Sequence record: MN871445.1 | Reading direction: 5' to 3' (one strand) | DNA: 64,000 nucleotides | Shown: positions 1-15,191 of the stretch, piece after piece | Layout of the letters: each line of letters opens with the position of its first letter | Position numbering within the stretch: position 1 is the stretch's first letter | The notes under the pieces: model-generated | Seen by the model: the letters and a program-made list of their open reading frames with translations, nothing else | Databases searched by the model: none | What the model was told of the DNA's origin: nothing | Translations under genes and position numbers: made by a program

Positions 1-906
1 CCCAGCGTCATCTTCTATGAAAAATTTGTCTTTTGACCCAATGACTATCGGGTTAATTATTCTTAGATTGCTGACATACGAGCAGTTAATCCCAATCCCA
101 AATGGGTTAGTGTAATTAATATTATTTAACCTTGGACGCTCTAATACGATATTTTCTAGTACGGTGGCTTTTCCACACACGGCGGTATCCGTAACTAAGA
201 ACGAATATTCCAACACCCTGTCCAGGGAATAAATATAATTACTGCCGGATACATCCCTTTTAGCAACTTTACGGAGTTGAGCTTGTTTAACTCCCTGATT
301 ATTTGCGCCCGGGACTAGTTTCTCAGATCTAATTTCGACCCAATCACCTACAGAAAACACGTCGGTAGTCAGTGTTATTTGATATCCCCCAGCCAAGGAG
401 TCCACTGCCAGACTATACCAGGTTGACGGGGCGGCACCGGCTAAGGTAAATCCTTGAACCAATGTAGCTGGAGCGTCAACTTCCCCCAACCCAGTAAAAG
501 TAATATAAGAATTGCTTTTAACGGATAAGGTTCCTGTCGGGGTGATCGCGGCATTAAAATGTATGTTGGTAAGTCCGGAAGCCAGGTATGTATTTATAGT
601 TGTGGATGTAGAAAATAATGAACTGTTGGCCGTCAGCTCTTTAACTAATTTCCATCGTTTTCCAAGGGTCGTAATTAAACAAGTAGTGGAATCATCTTGA
701 GTCTGAGTATCGGTTAAATCCGCTCGATATAAATATTTATTAAATAGCCACACTGCTTCACCATCAGTGGTTGGTTCTCTAGTTCTCAGAGTAGTAATAT
801 CAGCTATTTGTGGTATTTTATTATTTAGCGATATTTGTAAATTGCTACCGTCTGATGTCCCTATCAGACTCGCCCCTTTACCCATTTCACTTGAACCCAG
901 GTTTGA
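1..906 (-). CDS. Silent tailspike cassette A (headless, runs off the left edge; not in ORF track)
   Basis: Manual translation of the - strand from 906 is open to base 1: SNLGSSEMGKGASLIGTSDGSNLQISLNNKIPQIADITTLRTREPTTDGEAVWLFNKYLYRADLTDTQTQDDSTTCLITTLGKRWKLVK...FSVGDWVEIRSE...; in-frame TAA ~45 nt upstream and no start codon before the recombination site. Confidence 0.85.
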
Positions 907-912
907 AAGAAG
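835..912 (-). repeat. 78-bp inverted repeat copy of 6704-6781 (1 mismatch), containing site A
   Basis: Reverse complement CTTCTTTCAAACCTGGGTTCAAGTGAAATGGGTAA(A/C)GGGGCGAGTCTGATAGGGACATCAGACGGTAGCAATTTACAA matches 6704-6781. Confidence 0.95.
886..911 (-). other. Invertase recombination site A (hix/gix-like, 26 bp)
   Basis: Reverse complement TTCTTTCAAACC-TG-GGTTCAAGTGAA, identical to site C; AACC-NN-GGTT core as in hix/gix. Confidence 0.88.
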
Positions 913-3524: not shown

Positions 3525-4043
3525 ATGCCAGCAAGTATGTATGTAGTGGATACGTCCCTACCCTCTGTTGATTTGGTCTACGGGCTTATCAACAACGATA
3601 ACAACACAGTTTACAGTAAATCAACACTCAACCTGGCTACGCCAGAAACAAATACCAATCCCGCGATTGATCGTAATAGTAAAATCCTGGCTTCGAACAT
3701 CAAATACAGTAACAACACGCTGATGCTGTATTACGATAGATTGGATATTGCTGATGTATTGCGCATGGAGTTACCCATCATTTTGTCGAATGTAACTGAA
3801 ACCACGGTAGACCAAATGATGTGGTTTTTTAACTCCACGTACAAGATGGGATTGACCAAAGCTGAAATTAGTGCGTCGGCGGTTGATTTAACCGGCAACA
3901 CCACTACGTGGGCAATTGCGGATAATTCAATGGCGTGGGTGGGAAATCTACCATTAACCATTTTACCATCTGGGTACGGTCTTTTGATTGATGAAACAAA
4001 CAATCAATTGTTGGATGAGGATGGGTCATATTTGATTTTATAA
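3525..4043 (+). CDS. Virion structural/adaptor protein (paralog of 12190)
   Basis: LVYGLINNDN, YYDRLD, SMAWVGNLP and C-terminal LLDEDGSYLIL shared with 12190..12711. Confidence 0.7.
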   Translation: MPASMYVVDTSLPSVDLVYGLINNDNNTVYSKSTLNLATPETNTNPAIDRNSKILASNIKYSNNTLMLYYDRLDIADVLRMELPIILSNVTETTVDQMMWFFNSTYKMGLTKAEISASAVDLTGNTTTWAIADNSMAWVGNLPLTILPSGYGLLIDETNNQLLDEDGSYLIL

Positions 4044-4056
4044 ATAGGGCATAAAA

Positions 4057-4076
4057 GGGAGGGCGAAAGCCCTCCC
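4057..4076. terminator. Hairpin between convergent genes
   Basis: GGGAGGGC-GAAA-GCCCTCCC; TTTTATGCC follows on the - strand. Confidence 0.8.
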
Positions 4077-4109: not shown

Positions 4110-5924
4110 TTAAAATATCCAACATCCCCGAGCAGAATTCCACATAAATTCATATATCCCGACATCGGTGATGGAAACCGAAGTTAATCCACTCCCACCA
4201 GGACCGTAAATGGTTTGTGCATTAGAGGTTTGTATGGTATACGTCGGGGCCGCCAATACTTTTTTAACTCGAATCATAAAGCCACTAGACAAACCACTGG
4301 CGTCTGGCAGCGTAAAAGTACTGGCTGAGGAAGCAACGGAATAATACAAATTACTTAATCCAGTTGTGGGGAAAGTATACCCCGAAGTAATTTCAGTGTA
4401 TGTGATATTGACCCCGGACAAATAATTCAAATATAATTTACCGGTACCCCACGTGAGCATTGGTAATGGATCTGCAGTACCACCACCGCCATAAATGCCA
4501 TTAGGGGTAATATTTAATCTGGCATAATTTTCACTAGTATATTTTACACTGTATCTAACTTGAGTAGTGGATGTTGCGGCTTGTTGAATTGGCTGTATAG
4601 CATCTAAATATCTGACCTCATTAAAGGTATAATTACTCCTATTTGGGTTAGAAGTTATCGCCACTGCCGCACTATCGCCCAATGAACCAGTAGCTACCGA
4701 GGAGGTGAATATGTCTTTTTCACCATCCCAAATGGTAGTCGATCCGGATTGGAACGCCATGCAATAGGCTACTCTAGTATAATTGCTATCGGAGGAATAG
4801 TTAAAATGGCTGTTTGAAGTGACTATCTTCCTAATAGACGCGGTTAATTTAATATTCGCATAGGCGTCGGTAAGCAATGTATCCGCGCTAGACCGCCAAC
4901 CATTGGCAAAAAACGTGGTTGCTAAAATTTCATGTATTTCAGACCCTCCTGGGGTATTAAACAGAATACCATTTTTACCGCAGGAATTTACATGATTACG
5001 CACCATTGAAGTTATTGTCGCTGTAGGACCAAATACGATACCATTTTCCCTACCTTCATAAGACTCAGAATTAATCATTCTGAAACTACCGCAATTGGCG
5101 TAGATATTATCTTCATTACTTCTACCAATCGATGAACTAAATAACATCCAGTCCACGGCGCTTTCCAAATACAGGCATGATTTCCAACACCACAAAACAC
5201 TACTATAATTTAAAAATCCCATGTTTCTTTTAACGCCGGCATATACCCCATAACCAGAAAAATTAGATATTGTCGAATTTATAAATTGTAGGGATGTGGC
5301 GTATTGGCTTGCGGCGGTTAGATAAATACAATTCAATTGTCCCGTCGTGGGGGGTGTTGGACTATATATTGAACCGGTAGTAGTCCAGTCCCCGACTAAT
5401 CGACAGCCATCAAAAGTAGGTGATGCTGCCGCCGACACGGTGAACATATTCCCAACAGTGCCGGGGTAGGGCTTGATATAACTTTCTGAACGCTTACCGG
5501 CCCCTTCAAAATAAACACTACTAGTAATATTAAGATTACCCACTAAATAAGTAGTGTCCTGTTTTAATACTATTTTTCCGGTTCCAGCGGCATTAATTGC
5601 ATTTTGAAAAGGTATGGTATCATCGGATACGCCATCGCACTTCACGCCAAACCAATCCGGATTTATCTTAACTACATTCGAACGTTTCCATCGTTTACCC
5701 CCAACAGTGACTATTACGGTTCCACCATTGTCAGTAGAAGTCGTATCCGCAGCATCATAATAAAATTCACCGCCGCCAACTGGGGCGATAGTAATAGCCC
5801 ATCCCGGGTAATATGCGACAACCTCAATTTTTTGTCCGGAGGTGGTCGGCTCTATCGTCCGTAAGGTTGAAATATCGGAACACCGACCAATATATTTATA
5901 TCCATCACTTGAACCCAGGTTTGA
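4110..5924 (-). CDS. Silent tailspike cassette B (pectate-lyase-like beta-helix), lacking its own N-terminus
   Basis: Begins at site B with SNLGSSDGYKYIG; DNGGTVIVTVGGKRWKR and WFGVKCDGVSDDTIPFQNAINAA motifs; the called TTG start has no RBS. Confidence 0.85.
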   Translation of the reverse strand, partial: SNLGSSDGYKYIGRCSDISTLRTIEPTTSGQKIEVVAYYPGWAITIAPVGGGEFYYDAADTTSTDNGGTVIVTVGGKRWKRSNVVKINPDWFGVKCDGVSDDTIPFQNAINAAGTGKIVLKQDTTYLVGNLNITSSVYFEGAGKRSESYIKPYPGTVGNMFTVSAAASPTFDGCRLVGDWTTTGSIYSPTPPTTGQLNCIYLTAASQYATSLQFINSTISNFSGYGVYAGVKRNMGFLNYSSVLWCWKSCLYLESAVDWMLFSSSIGRSNEDNIYANCGSFRMINSESYEGRENGIVFGPTATITSMVRNHVNSCGKNGILFNTPGGSEIHEILATTFFANGWRSSADTLLTDAYANIKLTASIRKIVTSNSHFNYSSDSNYTRVAYCMAFQSGSTTIWDGEKDIFTSSVATGSLGDSAAVAITSNPNRSNYTFNEVRYLDAIQPIQQAATSTTQVRYSVKYTSENYARLNITPNGIYGGGGTADPLPMLTWGTGKLYLNYLSGVNITYTEITSGYTFPTTGLSNLYYSVASSASTFTLPDASGLSSGFMIRVKKVLAAPTYTIQTSNAQTIYGPGGSGLTSVSITDVGIYEFMWNSARGCWIF

Positions 5925-5929
5925 GGGAA
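5904..5929 (-). other. Invertase recombination site B
   Basis: Reverse complement TTCCCTCAAACC-TG-GGTTCAAGTGAT, 23/26 identical to site C. Confidence 0.88.
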
Positions 5930-5962
5930 TATATGTCGACACCAACCCTCAAGGACATAAAA

Positions 5963-6514
5963 ATGATCTACGGTTATGCCCGAGTTTCTACTCAACATCA
6001 GGATACTACACTACAACTTATTGCGCTTCAGGCAGCTGGCTGCGATGAAATTCGCGAAGAAAAAGCGTCTGGTAGAAGTAGAAACAGGCCCGTATTGAAG
6101 AAACTGCTAACCGATCTTCAATCCGGCGATGAATTAGTATTGTGGAAAATAGACAGGATGGGTAGGAATGTATTACATGCCTTAACCTGGTTGGCTGAGC
6201 TGCAAGATAAGAATGTAAACCTCAGGTCGATCACCGATGCCATCGATATGCGCACTGCTTCTGGCCGTTATAGTTTTCGCAATATTTTGAATGCCGCACA
6301 GTACGAATCGGACGTAAATAGCGAAAGAACCTTGGCTGGACTAGCTGCAGCCAGAGCACAAGGTAGGGTGGGTGGAAGAAAACCAACAATGACCGAACCC
6401 GTTTTGGAGAAAGCACGGGATTTGATAAATGCTGGAAACAATTACCGCGAAGTAGCTGAAGCCATCGGAGTGACCACAAAAACGATATACAAATATTTTC
6501 CAGTCAATTCATAA
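5963..6514 (+). CDS. Serine recombinase, Hin/Gin/Pin DNA-invertase family (183 aa)
   Basis: MIYGYARVST (catalytic Ser9), WKIDRMGR, ERTLAGLAAARAQGRVGGR, C-terminal HTH; AAGGA RBS at 5951; the upstream ORF-track extension is spurious. Confidence 0.95.
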   Translation: MIYGYARVSTQHQDTTLQLIALQAAGCDEIREEKASGRSRNRPVLKKLLTDLQSGDELVLWKIDRMGRNVLHALTWLAELQDKNVNLRSITDAIDMRTASGRYSFRNILNAAQYESDVNSERTLAGLAAARAQGRVGGRKPTMTEPVLEKARDLINAGNNYREVAEAIGVTTKTIYKYFPVNS

Positions 6515-6520
6515 TTTTTG

Positions 6521-6543
6521 ATGAGGCGGCTTGGCCGCCTCAT
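6521..6543 (+). terminator. Hairpin after invertase gene
   Basis: ATGAGGCGGC-TTG-GCCGCCTCAT followed by TTTATGC. Confidence 0.75.
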
Positions 6544-6577
6544 TTTATGCTTATCATTTTTTACAAGAGGGGCTATC
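6542..6577 (+). promoter_or_regulatory. Putative late promoter (TATG) and RBS of the constant tailspike head
   Basis: ATTTTATGC...AGAGGGGCTATCATG; TATG is the phiKZ late-promoter consensus. Confidence 0.45.
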
Positions 6578-8269
6578 ATGGCCAACAGAGCGATTACGAA
6601 GAAAATTAGTGCTTTGCCGACCTACGCACTGAACAACAATAACGGCAATTTACTGTATAGTGAGGGGGGTGCAAATTACCAATTTCCGTTGAGTAATATT
6701 GCCCTTCTTTCAAACCTGGGTTCAAGTGAAATGGGTAACGGGGCGAGTCTGATAGGGACATCAGACGGTAGCAATTTACAACAAATTGCAACAGTAGTAA
6801 GTGACCAACTTATAACCAACCCACAAATTGTTGCTGGCGACAACATGTCCGTTTTAGACCGAATCAAAGTCAAAGGTCAGTATGACATCAACCCGGCACC
6901 TCAGGAACCCCAAGCTGCAGTAGGTATTACTTTTGGAGGGCAGAATAATACCGGAACCATTATGTTAAATAGTCGAGGTGGAATTCAAACCTCGGTCACA
7001 GTAGATGGTTTAACTACAGCGAAAGGATTACACTACCCCTATTCGGAAGGAATGGGTTATTGGCATGGGGCCTATCAAGATACCTTAGTAAAATTCCCTA
7101 TAGACGGGATGGCCGATGATAATATCACATACGGTATATTGTTCTCACATGACGAAAAAACCAACACTCCCAGGATGTTTGCGGTATCTCCACAGTTAAC
7201 AGAACGGGTTAACTATACAGATCCAGGTAGATATCGCTGGGGCGGCGCAAACTTTACAGCAGTCCGTGAATTGGCCCAGCTCGATGCAATTGGTAGAAGT
7301 TCAGCCAATTCATACGACACTTGGTTCACATTGGATAGTTCCAATCCCAATTATATTAATTTCGTATCTTTAACAAATCCAAATTCTGTTACTGGTGGTA
7401 ATTTTTCATGTATTTTCAGTATAGGCAATTATAGTGCTGATAAAGTTACAACCTACATACTGGACGTAACAATTCCATCGGCGATTACCGCATTAACTCA
7501 ATATGACGTTAATAAATACATTAGATTTACGGGGATTGGTGGAGGTTCACTATATCACTATACGGACGCTACTTCTCAAACAAAACCTCGGATTGGTTTT
7601 GTTCAAAACACCACCACCGGGGTACTTGATTTTTATATTCAGGTACCAGCACACGCAACCTATTTTGGTTGTAAATGCTTAAATTCAGGCAATCCTGCTT
7701 TATTTGACTGGAGATGGAGAAATTACACCGGGGGTACGCAATTATCGGGTCTTGCCGGTAGTCCTCCTGCAGGTGTTGTTTGGGGGAACACGGCATATAC
7801 TGGAAGTAATTATCGAACAGTGATGTTAAATGACGGTAGTTTATTTTCAGTACCTGAGGGCTATGCTGTCTTGAGATGTCACATCAATGGCCCAGCCGGG
7901 GTGATTAACGCCGCGCCATTTAAAGCATATGTGTCATCATTTTGTTATGCGACTAATTTCGACAGTAAAATAGCCAATGTGACTTGCGCCATACCTAGTT
8001 TAAACTGGTATATCACCGGAGCAGATCTAGCCACAGATATGCCTTGGCAGATTAGACTCCCCCACGATCTAACTGATGTCGAATCGTACCGATGTGTTGT
8101 GTCTAGTACTGATACAACAAATCACACATTTATGTTTGCTGTCAAAAAAGTGAATACTTCCGGCACGTTAGATTCCAGTAATAACGTAATTTTGACCAAG
8201 TCCCTAAGTACTAGTCCAGTACAAATAAGTAGTGTATCGTGGATTGATGTACTGGTTAAACTACCATAA
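6578..8269 (+). CDS. Currently assembled switchable receptor-binding protein: constant head (aa 1-46) plus cassette C (563 aa)
   Basis: MANRAITKKISALPTY anchor; site C at codons 43-51; GASLIG neck; GAGG RBS before ATG 6578. Confidence 0.85.
   Translation: MANRAITKKISALPTYALNNNNGNLLYSEGGANYQFPLSNIALLSNLGSSEMGNGASLIGTSDGSNLQQIATVVSDQLITNPQIVAGDNMSVLDRIKVKGQYDINPAPQEPQAAVGITFGGQNNTGTIMLNSRGGIQTSVTVDGLTTAKGLHYPYSEGMGYWHGAYQDTLVKFPIDGMADDNITYGILFSHDEKTNTPRMFAVSPQLTERVNYTDPGRYRWGGANFTAVRELAQLDAIGRSSANSYDTWFTLDSSNPNYINFVSLTNPNSVTGGNFSCIFSIGNYSADKVTTYILDVTIPSAITALTQYDVNKYIRFTGIGGGSLYHYTDATSQTKPRIGFVQNTTTGVLDFYIQVPAHATYFGCKCLNSGNPALFDWRWRNYTGGTQLSGLAGSPPAGVVWGNTAYTGSNYRTVMLNDGSLFSVPEGYAVLRCHINGPAGVINAAPFKAYVSSFCYATNFDSKIANVTCAIPSLNWYITGADLATDMPWQIRLPHDLTDVESYRCVVSSTDTTNHTFMFAVKKVNTSGTLDSSNNVILTKSLSTSPVQISSVSWIDVLVKLP
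6705..6730 (+). other. Invertase recombination site C (inverted relative to A and B)
   Basis: TTCTTTCAAACC-TG-GGTTCAAGTGAA, read in frame as S-N-L-G-S-S. Confidence 0.9.
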
Positions 8270-8284: not shown

Positions 8285-10012
8285 ATGAATTATTATTATA
8301 TCGATCCAACCGCCACGTCCTCAGGTAATGGGACAATAACATCACCACATCAATCGTTTACTGCGCTGATCTCCGCAGGTATAATTCATCCATGCACTAT
8401 TTATTTGAAACGAGGGACTACGTTATGTGAAAACGCCAACTTTGGTGTATCTGGTCTGGCCAATACTACTGGGATTATGTCGTATATAGATTGCTACGGT
8501 TCCGGGCCTTTACCAATATGGTTGAATAAAAAATACGTCACCGTGGGAACCGCATTAGATGGATATACTTATAGCGGTATGCATATTACCGCACGAAATA
8601 CACAAAACATCACCATCCAAAATATTGAATTTTATACCAGGAATGACTTGACTGTGGTTGACAATAACCCCTCTTCATTCTTATGGTTGGAATTGCCAGC
8701 GGCCACTACCGAGATATCCGCTAACGTATGGGTTAACCAATGTAAGTTCCATGGTGACCCGATTATCCGTAGTGGAAAACACACGTGGTATGAATCGGTC
8801 ATTAATATAAAAGTCAATGCAAGTGCAACTAATAGGGTTAATTATTTTGGCGTACGGTATTGTGACTTTTATAACGTATCAAGGCCCATCAATATTGTCG
8901 GCAATCATTGGACGGCGGACGATATTACTAGCAATACAACTGGTACTTATTATTCCAGGGGTGTAAAAGTAGAACACTGTTCTATGGTCGGGATTTCAAA
9001 AGGCGGTTGTCAGTTTGCCGGAGTGGAAAGTAAAAACTCCGCATATGTCGTGGATGTTGACCAATCGGTTATGCGCGATATCAGCTATTCCAAATACCGA
9101 TGGGATAACGCGTTGGAAAATTCTGATACGTTGTATGCTGACGCCGGATTCTGGACTTATAGATGTAATCGGGTGATGCTTGAAAATATCCGTGGTGGTG
9201 GGATGTGGCCTTCTGTGACGGACAACGAATTAATTGATTTCGATTACCTCAGCTGGGATTGTGTTGCACGATACATTATCGGGTTCAACAACGCAGCATC
9301 AATATTGTTTATGGGGCATTCTTCTACCGCTTCTCAAGGCGGTTCTAGGGCAGCATATTCAGGTTATTCCTCAACGTATACTCCAGCGCAATGGTTTTAT
9401 GAGCGTAGAAATGGTCAGGGTAATAACATTGTTGAGTTTTGCTATTTCTTCAACGATGGGATTCAAACCGTGCCCGCCCCCTCCACTGGATATGGGGATT
9501 GCGCAAATATCCGTTCCAGGAATATAAATTATTCAAATATTGTTAGGAATTGTGTATTCATTGATACCGTGTCTACTACGATGAAATATTTGGTTTCTAA
9601 TAACAATCTTGCACTTACTGCTGGAGAGCCATACCGTCTATCTATCGAAAACTGCGTTTACTATTCCAGATACAACAATGGAATTGACCTAATAACTCCA
9701 CTCGCAAACACAACCACGTATAGTGCAACAGCGACGAAGATGACTAACATAATTGCTATGTCTGCCGCATGGGCAAGTACTAATTATGCGTCTATTCTTA
9801 GCACTTTAAGTGCTAACTGCACCACTAATAATGCTCGGATAGTCGACCCCCTATTTCGCTTCGTACCAGCCCAACCTCCAGTATCGGTGAAATCGGCATT
9901 AAAGATATCCGTGACCTCCGATTCACCCTGTATTTCTTCCGGCATATCCAGCGGTAATTTGGACATCGTGGGGAAAACGTGCTCCGATATTTTTTGGAGA
10001 TCCTTAAGTTGA
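8285..10012 (+). CDS. Beta-helix polysaccharide lyase/depolymerase-like protein without virion-anchor module
   Basis: YYIDPTATSSGNGTITSP N-terminus, IQNIEF and VRNCVF beta-helix rungs, DPLF near C-terminus. Confidence 0.65.
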   Translation: MNYYYIDPTATSSGNGTITSPHQSFTALISAGIIHPCTIYLKRGTTLCENANFGVSGLANTTGIMSYIDCYGSGPLPIWLNKKYVTVGTALDGYTYSGMHITARNTQNITIQNIEFYTRNDLTVVDNNPSSFLWLELPAATTEISANVWVNQCKFHGDPIIRSGKHTWYESVINIKVNASATNRVNYFGVRYCDFYNVSRPINIVGNHWTADDITSNTTGTYYSRGVKVEHCSMVGISKGGCQFAGVESKNSAYVVDVDQSVMRDISYSKYRWDNALENSDTLYADAGFWTYRCNRVMLENIRGGGMWPSVTDNELIDFDYLSWDCVARYIIGFNNAASILFMGHSSTASQGGSRAAYSGYSSTYTPAQWFYERRNGQGNNIVEFCYFFNDGIQTVPAPSTGYGDCANIRSRNINYSNIVRNCVFIDTVSTTMKYLVSNNNLALTAGEPYRLSIENCVYYSRYNNGIDLITPLANTTTYSATATKMTNIIAMSAAWASTNYASILSTLSANCTTNNARIVDPLFRFVPAQPPVSVKSALKISVTSDSPCISSGISSGNLDIVGKTCSDIFWRSLS

Positions 10013-10051: not shown

Positions 10052-10075
10052 GAGGCAGGGCTTTCGCCCTGCCTC
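10052..10075 (+). terminator. Rho-independent terminator
   Basis: GAGGCAGGGC-TTTC-GCCCTGCCTC plus T-tract. Confidence 0.8.
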
Positions 10076-10132
10076 TTTTATTTCGCCAGTTCCGTAGTCG
10101 GTGAGCTACGTCAAAACCAAAGGATACTGATT

Positions 10133-12189: not shown

Positions 12190-12711
12190 ATGTCCTCAAA
12201 CTTCTATATTGTCGACTTATCTTTACCGGCCACCGAACTCGTTTATGGTCTTATCAACAATGATAACGATACGAATTACGGGCCAGACAAAGTAACCCTC
12301 GGTGAAGTATCTGCCGTCCCAAGCGAAACTCCACGCAACAGTACGTTGACCCTTTCGAGGGTCAACTATCCACTCATGACTCTCGATATTTTCTATGACC
12401 GGCTAACCTTTGCCGAAGTCATTGATTCTGATTACCCTATCGTTATAAGTCGTGAGGCTGGAGATACTACCACCTGGGATTTAATCAATGGGGTTAATGA
12501 AGGGCTGGGGTTTGGGTTGGTGCCGGCTGATATCGTTAACGCTGTTCTCGATCTGGGTGACCCCAACGTTATTCTTGAGGCAGGTGAAAAGTCCTATGCG
12601 TGGCTTGGGGAAATACCTGTATTGTATTTGGAACCCGGAGAAATCGCCTTCCAGATAAATGACGGTGATTTGCTTTATCTTGATGACGATACCATCATGG
12701 TGGGAAATTAA
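12190..12711 (+). CDS. Virion structural/adaptor protein (paralog of 3525)
   Basis: LVYGLINNDN, FYDRL, SYAWLGEIP, acidic/hydrophobic C-terminus. Confidence 0.7.
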   Translation: MSSNFYIVDLSLPATELVYGLINNDNDTNYGPDKVTLGEVSAVPSETPRNSTLTLSRVNYPLMTLDIFYDRLTFAEVIDSDYPIVISREAGDTTTWDLINGVNEGLGFGLVPADIVNAVLDLGDPNVILEAGEKSYAWLGEIPVLYLEPGEIAFQINDGDLLYLDDDTIMVGN

Positions 12712-12713
12712 TT

Positions 12714-15191
12714 ATGTCTACTAAAGTAGTGAAAAAGAAACTCACGGACCTGCCCGTGTACGTGCAGACTACTGCTAGTTCGGGTTCCCTTCATTATCGT
12801 GAAGGAAATGTCGATTACCAATTTCCGATCACTTCTATACTTACGCCTATATCTCTCGGGGCCGTAGATGGTTACAAGTATATTGGTCAAGTAACATCAT
12901 TTGCAGCACTTAGAAGCCTATCTCCGACCGCCGAAGGCGCTAGAATTAAACTACGCGAATATGCGGTTGGTACTGGTATGGGTGGTGGGGATTTCATCGG
13001 ACATATCGGAACAGCAACCGATGACTCCGGCACTATTGCGGTTGGGACGGGTTATTACTGGAAACGTGTAATTGATGTCCCAGGCGTAATTGATGCCACT
13101 TGGTTTGGTGTGACCAATGATGGTGTTTCTTCGGCACAGGCCATTAGTTTGGCGTTGGACTATATTTCTGTAACTGGGGGGATTTTGAGATTCCCTTCGG
13201 GGGAAATAAACTGGGGGACCCTGAGAAAAGTCATTAACTATTCAACCTCGTTGGTGTCTTTTACCATAGAAGGTATGGGTGACTCTACTCTATTTTCTTA
13301 TGATGATGTCCCACCACCCACATTACCCGCGGGCAGTAATTGGGTAAAAGAATCCCCCTTATTGTCATTTATTGGCAATAACGGGACCCAATGCATTCCA
13401 CCGATTACTTTACAAAAATTCAGAATGGATTACTCTCGCCAGGTAAATAAGGGAGGGAATACATTAGAGACTTTGGGGATTACACACCCCACGCCATATT
13501 CCCTGGGGGTTTGGGGATTTTACTTCATGTATGCTGACTCGCCCTACATTAATCGGGTTAAAATGTCGAACATATATGGTGATGGTATTTTCATCAGAAA
13601 ATCATTTACCCCGCGCGTTCAAGATTGTCACTTTTATAATGTCTCCGCTGGGAACATTATTGCAAGAACTGATGGGAACATGGCGTCAGATTCTAACGGA
13701 GGTGCTGTCTTCATATGGGCGTGCGTTGGTGGCGTTGTGGATGGGTGTGTTGCGTGGAACCAACGTTTATATCAAGTGCACGTCAATTCGACCGACAACG
13801 GTACGGATGTTTATGGTACTTTGTGTGGGTATATTGGATTTTGGACCGAATATCCGTGGGACCAAAACCTGACCGCGACTACTCCGGAAACGGCACCGCC
13901 TCGAGTTAACGGGTTTATTACGACGGCGAACGTTACGACCAATAATTACGATAATGAAGCCAAAGGTTGCACGATTAGCAATTGTACTGTTTATGGTTAC
14001 ACTATCGGAATTAAATCCGAGGGTCAGAACGAAACCAATATCACCAATAACTTGGTTTTAAACTGCTATCTTCCTCTTTTCCCGGCAAGTACTCGAGCGA
14101 CGATTTCCAATAACTTTACGGACATGCTTTATTGTGATAATAGGAAATGCCCTCAAGGTGGTTATGAGAGTATTCGTGCTCATTTAGTTAGCCACAATTA
14201 TTCTACTTATGATGATGGGATGCGTCGGGGAGTAGAATTCAAAGGTAATAAATGCTATTGTACGAATTACCCAGCAATCCGCTCTAACCGTGCAGGTACT
14301 CTGTTTGATTCCAACATGTTTAGATTCTCTCGGGGAACGGCATTTCTATTCGATGTTACGATCAATACTTTGAAAAAAGGAGTAGTTCTGCGAGACAATA
14401 CCTTTTTCATCGATTCTACCATTTCTGGGGTAACTACTTCAAATGTGGCCTATCAAGATGGTATTGTATTTGCCGGTAATAGGTTTGTCAACAACTCGTC
14501 GCAGGTGGTTACTATTGCCTTTAGGAACAGCAGTACCGATGTTCGCGTAGATGATAATACGTTTGAAGGTGCGTTTTTCTTTGCTTTACAATGTTCGGGA
14601 ACCGTGGAAAAAAATATTTTTGATGTTAACACGGCCGTTGGTGGGGTCTACCAAACTACCGTTGTTTTCCAGGCCACGGCTAGGGGGACCATCCGGAACA
14701 ACACCTTCCGACTTAATACGGCAGTAACGACCGCACAAATATCATTAGGTGCGGATAACATCCGATTTGATGGTAATGAAATCTCGTTTAAAGATACCGG
14801 TGCTGGAACTGCGTTGGCGCTTATTTATTCCGAGTCTAGTGCAGCGGGATTGGTACTTCAAAACAATAAAATATTAACTAACCCTTATGCTTTACCTATG
14901 TTTTATTTGTATGGGTCCCATTATCCGACCATCATTGGGAATAGCAATCCACTTGGTGCTGGCATCCGCTACGGAAGTCAGATTTACGCACCGATTACTT
15001 TGGATAGAAATTTATTTTCCACGCCATTTTCTAACCTTACTACGGAGAAAAACAATGCAGCTAATTTTTCTTCTAAGGCGATATCGTATCAGGGATTAAA
15101 AATGCCATACTTATTCCCGGTAGCTGGAGGGGCGGAAGGGGTAGTTTATACTCCAACTGGATGGAAAACATACGGTAGCATCTCAGCATAA
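12714..15191 (+). CDS. Tailspike / depolymerase-like protein
   Basis: KKLTDLPVY anchor, LGAVDGYKYIG, DDSGTI, WFGV..DG, GEINW beta-helix features. Confidence 0.85.
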   Translation: MSTKVVKKKLTDLPVYVQTTASSGSLHYREGNVDYQFPITSILTPISLGAVDGYKYIGQVTSFAALRSLSPTAEGARIKLREYAVGTGMGGGDFIGHIGTATDDSGTIAVGTGYYWKRVIDVPGVIDATWFGVTNDGVSSAQAISLALDYISVTGGILRFPSGEINWGTLRKVINYSTSLVSFTIEGMGDSTLFSYDDVPPPTLPAGSNWVKESPLLSFIGNNGTQCIPPITLQKFRMDYSRQVNKGGNTLETLGITHPTPYSLGVWGFYFMYADSPYINRVKMSNIYGDGIFIRKSFTPRVQDCHFYNVSAGNIIARTDGNMASDSNGGAVFIWACVGGVVDGCVAWNQRLYQVHVNSTDNGTDVYGTLCGYIGFWTEYPWDQNLTATTPETAPPRVNGFITTANVTTNNYDNEAKGCTISNCTVYGYTIGIKSEGQNETNITNNLVLNCYLPLFPASTRATISNNFTDMLYCDNRKCPQGGYESIRAHLVSHNYSTYDDGMRRGVEFKGNKCYCTNYPAIRSNRAGTLFDSNMFRFSRGTAFLFDVTINTLKKGVVLRDNTFFIDSTISGVTTSNVAYQDGIVFAGNRFVNNSSQVVTIAFRNSSTDVRVDDNTFEGAFFFALQCSGTVEKNIFDVNTAVGGVYQTTVVFQATARGTIRNNTFRLNTAVTTAQISLGADNIRFDGNEISFKDTGAGTALALIYSESSAAGLVLQNNKILTNPYALPMFYLYGSHYPTIIGNSNPLGAGIRYGSQIYAPITLDRNLFSTPFSNLTTEKNNAANFSSKAISYQGLKMPYLFPVAGGAEGVVYTPTGWKTYGSISA

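Follow-up and report, generated by a model that had tools for sequence, protein, structure and literature searches.

The genome of Serratia phage KpHz_2 probably encodes a functional switch that exchanges the receptor-binding end of a tail fibre by DNA inversion; judging from the sequence of the locus, we put the probability of this reading at roughly 80%. The analysed window, a stretch of 64,000 nucleotides from record MN871445.1, is 100% identical to the 270-kb KpHz_2 genome and contains, at positions 5963-6514, the gene of a serine DNA invertase that is flanked by a 25-nt inverted repeat (sites B and C). The record lists Klebsiella pneumoniae as the host and comes without annotation, and its organism name is flagged as unverified by GenBank (UNVERIFIED_ORG). 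In the switch as we propose it, the invertase would recognise three 26-bp gix/cix-like sites, A, B and C, and would presumably act by cleavage at the central TG, 180-degree subunit rotation and religation. Inversion between B and C would flip 0.8 kb carrying the invertase, a terminator, a promoter-like motif and a 47-codon fibre anchor, and inversion between A and C would flip 5.8 kb. In both cases the anchor would become joined, in frame, to a different receptor-binding end of depolymerase-like type; three alternative C-termini would thus be reachable from one anchor, and capsule specificity would be expected to change with the fibre end.

Candidate crossover sites and the invertase

A search with the 21-mer site found three copies, where 0.01 would be expected, at 887-907 (minus strand), 5905-5925 (minus strand, one mismatch) and 6709-6729 (plus strand), so that 20-21 of 21 positions agree among the three sites. 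Their build, AAACC and GGTT around a 2-bp core TG, is the same as that of P7 cix and Mu gix in the fetched records. Site C is inverted relative to A and B, which gives the locus the inverted 26-bp sites that are characteristic of Gin, Hin, Cin and Pin, and all three sites stand in the same codon phase, each encoding S-N-L-G-S-S. Site C lies in codon 47 of the fibre gene 6578-8269, and sites B and A each head a long minus-strand open frame with neither a start nor an anchor (cassettes B and A; Table 1). Cassette A extends about 1.1 kb past the left end of the window, its full open reading frame (ORF) being present in L039, and Pfam recognises in it K1-lyase Rider and C-terminal domains together with a beta-helix; a Pfam search with cassette C gave no match. 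Inverted homology between A and C covers about 77 bp, and that between B and C is confined to the site itself. The motif at 6541-6554, behind the hairpin that follows the invertase, recurs ahead of the fibre gene at 966.

The invertase has a Resolvase domain (PF00239, E 3.6e-36) and an HTH_7 domain (PF02796) in Pfam, and its residues 1-181 align without gaps to the Gin chains 3uj3 and 4m6f (E 2e-44 to 5e-44), which head the Protein Data Bank (PDB) ranking with resolvases far behind (E 5e-19). Over the full length it is 44-46% identical to Gin and Cin. Translations of the fetched Mu and P7 records served as wild-type Gin and Cin and share one numbering, to which Hin numbering adds 1; the PDB Gin chains carry the engineered M114V and hence show V114. 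The catalytic residues R7, S9, D64, R65 and R68 are each retained by 118-120 of 120 homologues, a set made up of the best matches (59-71% identity, and one 99% copy). These homologues come overwhelmingly from Enterobacteriaceae chromosomes and temperate phages (phi80 pinL, mEp237, HK225, SKA5). When clustered at 50%, the entire PinL-like clade collapses to one representative, and the next relatives are at most 48% identical. The protein has both the small resolvase/invertase-type serine recombinase build and the kinship to Gin, Hin, Cin and Pin by which the family is defined, and these comparisons place it in the Gin/Pin family, within the clade of phi80 PinL. Temperate enterobacterial phages were evidently the source of the invertase; of the jumbo genomes among about 50,700 phage records, just two have a close homologue. 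Two of the homologues, P0002 (71% identity) and P0004 (68%), were considered as further jumbo phages and rejected, as integrase or lambdoid tail genes alongside identify them as prophages.

Several features around the start of the gene and among its relatives were also recorded. An in-frame ATG 30 nt upstream (window 5933-5962) would make the invertase 193 aa, as called in the JGI copy; the GAGGG of this ATG, which resembles a ribosome-binding site (RBS), falls within site B, and the start of the homologues corresponds to the ATG at 5963. In nearly all of the clade's prophage members, a hairpin covers the RBS just upstream of the invertase start; KpHz_2 lacks this hairpin, and the distance from site to start is 46 bp in KpHz_2 versus about 75 bp in these prophage members. 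The mEpX1 invertase (6001-6549), 57% identical to that of KpHz_2 overall, resembles Gin and Cin over its first ~45 residues and in the DNA equivalent to the enhancer, and looks like a mosaic of the PinL-like and Gin/Cin-like clades. In IMG/VR, the 20-mer site was found on five unrelated contigs, one of which has a 48%-identical invertase: on IMGVR_UViG_3300011613_000018, an identical 20-nt core site (6347-6366) lies about 4 kb from that invertase (1823-2368). The presence of an identical site on an unrelated viral contig indicates that this type of site is not exclusive to the PinL-like clade.

Signs of use in the jumbo-phage lineage

KpHz_2 and Klebsiella phage vB_KvM-Eowyn are 96.3% identical across a 25-kb conserved stretch, which assigns KpHz_2 to the genus Eowynvirus. 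The anchor exon matches the start of Eowyn gp235 at 93% identity, and the Eowyn homologue of the fibre gene at 966 is annotated as a tail fiber protein. The corresponding region of Eowyn (about 8500-9000) lacks the invertase and cassette B; a short 3' relic of the invertase is present there, followed by the same hairpin, motif and anchor. The relic indicates that the gene was lost in Eowyn by a single deletion that also took cassette B, and it rules out that Eowyn represents the state before insertion of the module. Site C of Eowyn has two synonymous changes that leave the peptide intact, and its remnant of site A has four mismatches. The sites have thus drifted in the invertase-less phage and match at 20-21 of 21 positions in the invertase-bearing ones, and so remain exact only in the presence of the invertase.

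The invertase copies of KpGz_1 and of the metagenomic sequence L038 differ from that of KpHz_2 by 12 synonymous and 1 non-synonymous and by 18 synonymous and 1 non-synonymous changes, respectively. Within the jumbo-phage lineage, the ratio of non-synonymous to synonymous substitution rates (dN/dS) is 0.015-0.023 (three lineages), and the gene is evidently under purifying selection. Unrelated cassettes replace cassette B in KpGz_1 (514 aa) and L038 (647 aa), with homology breaking off at site B. Taken together, the purifying selection, the intact silent cassettes and the site decay seen in Eowyn speak for a switch that is in use. Alternatively, the locus might be an inert passenger, a prophage module that was captured recently and has since ceased to recombine in the jumbo phage; consistent with this, the three sequenced copies are all in one orientation, and Eowyn copes without an invertase. 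Nevertheless, a dN/dS of about 0.02 over three lineages, the exactness of sites that have drifted in Eowyn, and silent cassettes that are still open over about 600 and more than 660 codons speak against such a passenger, which we regard as very improbable.

A number of points weigh against a working switch. No inversion isomer was found, as KpHz_2, KpGz_1 and L038 share one junction at site B, and searches of IMG/VR and the JGI metagenomes for the sites and junctions returned no relatives; a protein scan of IMG/VR gave no further invertase-bearing relatives, and two junction-side patterns found nothing in the JGI metagenomes. A promoter of the invertase was not identified, the sole strong sigma-70-like match lying outside the small segment; phiKZ-like phages rely on their own polymerases. 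To reach the phage DNA, the invertase would have to enter the chimallin shell of the phage nucleus, considered below. Finally, sites A and B are directly repeated at a distance of 5 kb and enclose a fibre gene, so that an uncontrolled enzyme could delete genes; this arrangement argues for some control of the reaction and favours topological control of some form.

Table 1. Predicted features of the inversion locus, with positions in the window
Feature	Position	Strand	Basis
Silent receptor-binding C-terminal cassette A, depolymerase-like	1..885	-	Frame open through site A; Pfam
Crossover site A, 12+2+12 bp, central TG at 898-899	886..911	-	Exact 21-mer match
Separate tail-fibre gene (own N-terminal anchor) within the large A x C segment	966..3515	+	ORF and anchor motif
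DUF7941 protein, from a set of about 172-aa partners behind fibre genes	3525..4043	+	PF25613, E 1.8e-18
Silent receptor-binding C-terminal cassette B, weak beta-helix match	4110..5903	-	611-aa open frame without anchor
Crossover site B, 46 bp ahead of the invertase start, central TG at 5916-5917	5904..5929	-	21-mer, 1 mismatch
Serine DNA invertase, Gin/Pin family, PinL-like clade, 183 aa	5963..6514	+	Pfam, PDB Gin, homologues
Terminator-like hairpin behind the invertase	6520..6544	+	Sequence
Anchor exon, codons 1-47 of the switchable tail fibre, within the invertible segment with the invertase	6578..6718	+	Translation, frame
Crossover site C, central TG at 6717-6718, within codons S-N-L-G-S-S	6705..6730	+	21-mer, inverted repeat
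Receptor-binding C-terminal cassette C, in expressed position	6719..8269	+	ORF

The best sigma-70-like match of the region (10/12), at 5867-5896, is oriented towards the invertase and lies just beyond the small segment. It sits in the coding DNA of cassette B and is absent from KpGz_1; if it is used as a promoter, transcription of the invertase would depend on orientation. The sequence L038 is JGI contig Ga0490018_002396, with an invertase 99% identical to that of KpHz_2, and downstream of the invertase it continues directly into the mid-portion of a gene homologous to the fibre gene 12714-15191; this junction reflects either one large deletion or an assembly chimera.

The switchable fibre has relatives at the same locus. 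At least six fibre/depolymerase genes begin with a related anchor of ~45 residues (window 966, 6578, 10133 and 12714; L039 3387 and 6325), and a DUF7941-like protein of ~172 aa stands behind several of the anchor-bearing genes (3525-4043 and 12190-12711; L039 2790, 5167 and 5700). This arrangement suggests a branched set of receptor-binding proteins with a single switchable member. Two G+C-rich, terminator-like hairpins, at 4053-4076 and 10054-10077, form an inverted-repeat pair; the first follows the DUF7941 gene and is kept in Eowyn and KpGz_1, and the second follows a gene ending at 10012.

The phage nucleus, the E-helix and the question of Fis

The remainder of the KpHz_2 genome was fetched and examined beyond the window. 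It encodes chimallin (PF25677, E 1.5e-39), a PhuZ-type tubulin (TubZ_C_2 and Tubulin), a phiKZ-type major capsid protein (PF25620, E 9e-206), phiKZ internal head proteins and gp29PR, and an RNA-polymerase beta fragment (Rpb2_6). Chimallin, PhuZ, the phiKZ-type capsid and a split RNA polymerase, by which Chimalliviridae are recognised, are therefore all represented, and the first three bear out the phiKZ-like character assumed in the initial annotation. For Eowynvirus congeners, PhuZ and a nuclear shell protein have been reported (PMC13757433), and nucleus formation has been reported for congeners of KpHz_2 in a study in which the chimallin shell is described as keeping out host defence proteins (bioRxiv 10.1101/2024.10.29.620934). 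KpHz_2 is a lytic jumbo phage and, as judged from its gene content, forms a nucleus.

Gin, Hin, Cin and Pin as a family are marked by a need for Fis and for supercoiling and by inversion as the sole outcome. Members of the invertase family that have been characterised all require Fis (PMC4513852, PMC3798978), and the initial annotation had proposed that the KpHz_2 enzyme differs from Gin in the E-helix in a way that would free it from this requirement. Its gap-free alignment to Gin with F104S, H106R and M114Y is confirmed by comparison with the wild-type proteins: S104, R106 and Y114 of the KpHz_2 invertase stand opposite F104, H106 and M114 in both Gin and Cin, and positions 103, 107, 108, 109, 110, 111, 113 and 116 of the helix also differ from Gin. 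The literature agrees, too, that substitutions at these positions can free Gin or Hin from Fis (PMC3575834, PMC4513852): Gin M114V is Fis-independent or hyperactive (PMC3575834), and so are Hin H107Y and Gin/Hin F104V/F105V (PMC4513852). The further steps, that the three residues mark Fis independence and that they suit a phage nucleus, did not survive the comparison with homologues. R106 and Y114 are present in all 120 nearest homologues, and 119 of the 120 have N at position 104. Because most of these homologues come from prophages, which have no nucleus, the E-helix signature is inherited and not an adaptation to the nucleus.

Mutational data from Hin point the same way. In the complete scan of Hin F105 in the literature, Ser is inactive and Asn hyperactive, and Ile at Hin 109, the residue of the PinL-like clade, gives sick cells; single-residue effects from Hin evidently do not carry over to a protein that is 47% identical and under selection. 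The E-helix of the PinL-like clade is nonetheless genuinely unusual, as a clade trait: among 94 diverse representatives, R106 is rare (3/94), as is a polar residue at 104, and position 114 is mostly aromatic (F in 54, Y in 8). We consider S104, R106 and Y114 of KpHz_2, as placed by these alignments, to be an inherited clade signature that is not diagnostic of Fis independence.

Differences from Gin and Cin extend to the surfaces through which the family communicates with Fis and the enhancer. In Hin, residues Q151, R154 and L155 on the DNA-binding domain contact Fis, and K47, R48 and K51 of helix B contact enhancer DNA (McLean et al., PMC3798978). The equivalent residues of Gin and Cin are Q150, R153 and L154, and K46, R/K47 and K/R50; the KpHz_2 invertase has K150, D153 and L154, and K46, K47 and T50 (followed by D51). 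One of the three Fis-contact residues is therefore kept (L154), short of the full set found in Gin, Cin and Hin, and two of the three basic enhancer-contact residues are kept (K46 and K47). Across the PinL-like clade, position 50 is basic in 2/120 members and R153 occurs in 49/120, the patch being variable. The residues equivalent to the Phe88 pocket, at positions 63, 66, 76, 77 and 87, are I, M, W, L and L in the KpHz_2 invertase. Six homologues, including the temperate P0002, P0004 and P0006, match this pocket except at position 66, where they have I and not M.

The hin Fis sites are 47 bp apart and about 100 bp from hixL (PMC3798978). In the P7 record the cin enhancer occupies nt 19-86 of the gene, and the KpHz_2 equivalent, 5981-6048, lies about 65-130 bp from site B, a geometry similar to that of hin. 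The initial annotation had called for an enhancer search; run on this 5' part of the invertase gene, it revealed none that was recognisable, a negative that carries little weight given the weakness of the scan. Specifically, with the Fis-site criteria of PMC4784862, no convincing Fis-type cores were seen in 5981-6048, the scan being so degenerate that, in the control, it missed the first cin/gin site and found the second. In the segment that matches the second cin/gin Fis site, the bounding G and C are missing and the centre is rich in G/C. The enhancer-equivalent codons 7-29 showed no excess synonymous conservation between KpHz_2 and the clade, in an underpowered comparison (about 16 codons per pair); in the positive control, Gin versus Cin, the enhancer codons showed modest synonymous conservation (0.56 vs 0.36).

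These observations bear on two opposing accounts of how the invertase might be controlled. In the first, the E-helix substitutions make the enzyme naturally independent of Fis and the enhancer and were selected because Fis is excluded from the nucleus. Chimallin and PhuZ are indeed encoded, the invertase is under selection, and the contact surfaces carry Asp for Hin R154, Lys for Q151 and Thr (then Asp) for helix-B K51; Leu at position 87 recalls the hyperactivating Hin F88L (PMC4513852), and nt 19-86 lack enhancer-like conservation. However, prophage homologues, which encounter no nucleus, have R106 and Y114 without exception and almost always a polar residue at 104, and the pocket residues are likewise common to the temperate P0002, P0004 and P0006. 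Hin F105S is inactive, residue effects do not transfer across 47% identity, and our literature search found no experimental test of any clade member. Hyperactive Hin mutants lose the restriction to inversion (PMC3798978), and an uncontrolled enzyme acting on the direct repeats A and B would risk deletions. We consider this first account unlikely.

In the second account, the locus is an ordinary Gin-like system that depends on Fis and on an enhancer in the 5' part of the gene, with Fis reaching the DNA or a phage protein substituting for it. The rule that every characterised family member needs Fis favours such a system, as do the conserved geometry (site B 46 bp upstream and the enhancer equivalent about 65-130 bp off, as in hin), the retention of K46, K47 and L154, and a multi-site layout with direct repeats that calls for topological control. 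The altered second-Fis-site equivalent, with its missing G and C and its G/C-rich centre, the absence of excess synonymous conservation, Asp at 153 in place of Arg and Thr at 50 in place of Lys, and the reported barring of host defence proteins by the chimallin shell all speak against it; we regard ordinary Fis dependence as a serious candidate whose chances fall somewhat below one half. For the proposed switch itself, the contact residues are compatible with an invertase that may work without host Fis, for which we see roughly even odds. We hold with similar reserve, at marginally under an even chance, that the recombinase must work inside the phage nucleus without host Fis, being either enhancer-independent or aided by a phage-supplied architectural protein.

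Relation to known inversion systems

Tail-fibre inversion switches are typical of temperate phages such as Mu, P1 and e14. The proposed KpHz_2 switch resembles the Gin/G segment of Mu and the Cin/C segment of P1-P7 in enzyme family and site build. As in Mu and P1, tail-fibre C-termini would be swapped onto a constant N-terminus, and as in Mu and P7, a silent opposite-strand cassette lies directly upstream of the invertase gene. The layout is inside out by comparison: in Mu and P1 the invertase stands outside the segment and the variable ends flip, whereas in KpHz_2 the invertase and the constant anchor would flip and the variable ends stay fixed. Mu and P1 are, moreover, temperate phages with two sites, and KpHz_2 is lytic and predicted to form a nucleus, with three. 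Mu Gin and P7 Cin also differ from the KpHz_2 invertase in the E-helix, the basic patch of helix B and the Fis-contact residues. More than two crossover sites, giving several alternative fibre ends, are known from Min of plasmid p15B, as proposed for KpHz_2.

The Hin/H segment of Salmonella is similar to KpHz_2 in that the invertase lies within the segment, beside one site, and in that the part driving expression flips. Hin flips a flagellin promoter, whereas the KpHz_2 invertase would fuse a coding anchor in frame to alternative ends, and Fis dependence is proven for Hin and stands at roughly even odds for the KpHz_2 invertase. Closest to KpHz_2 are PinL of phi80 and related prophage invertases (59-71% identity); R106 and Y114 recur in this clade, along with a polar position 104 and a non-basic position 50, and its members likewise adjoin tail-fibre cassettes. 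The prophage members belong to temperate phages, have the invertase outside the segment and possess the RBS hairpin, and KpHz_2 differs in all three respects.

Our literature search found no report of a tail-fibre inversion switch in a jumbo or nucleus-forming phage, and no published experimental characterisation of the PinL-like clade. The clade is often found in prophages of Enterobacteriaceae, and its E-helix as well as its contact residues for Fis and the enhancer set it apart from Gin, Hin and Cin. The inside-out layout of KpHz_2, with its three depolymerase-like ends, would show that capsule specificity can be varied within one phage genome. It also sharpens the question of how a member of a strictly host-factor-dependent recombinase family acts on DNA within a chimallin shell; if the invertase does work without host Fis, the family would have its first natural exception to the Fis rule.
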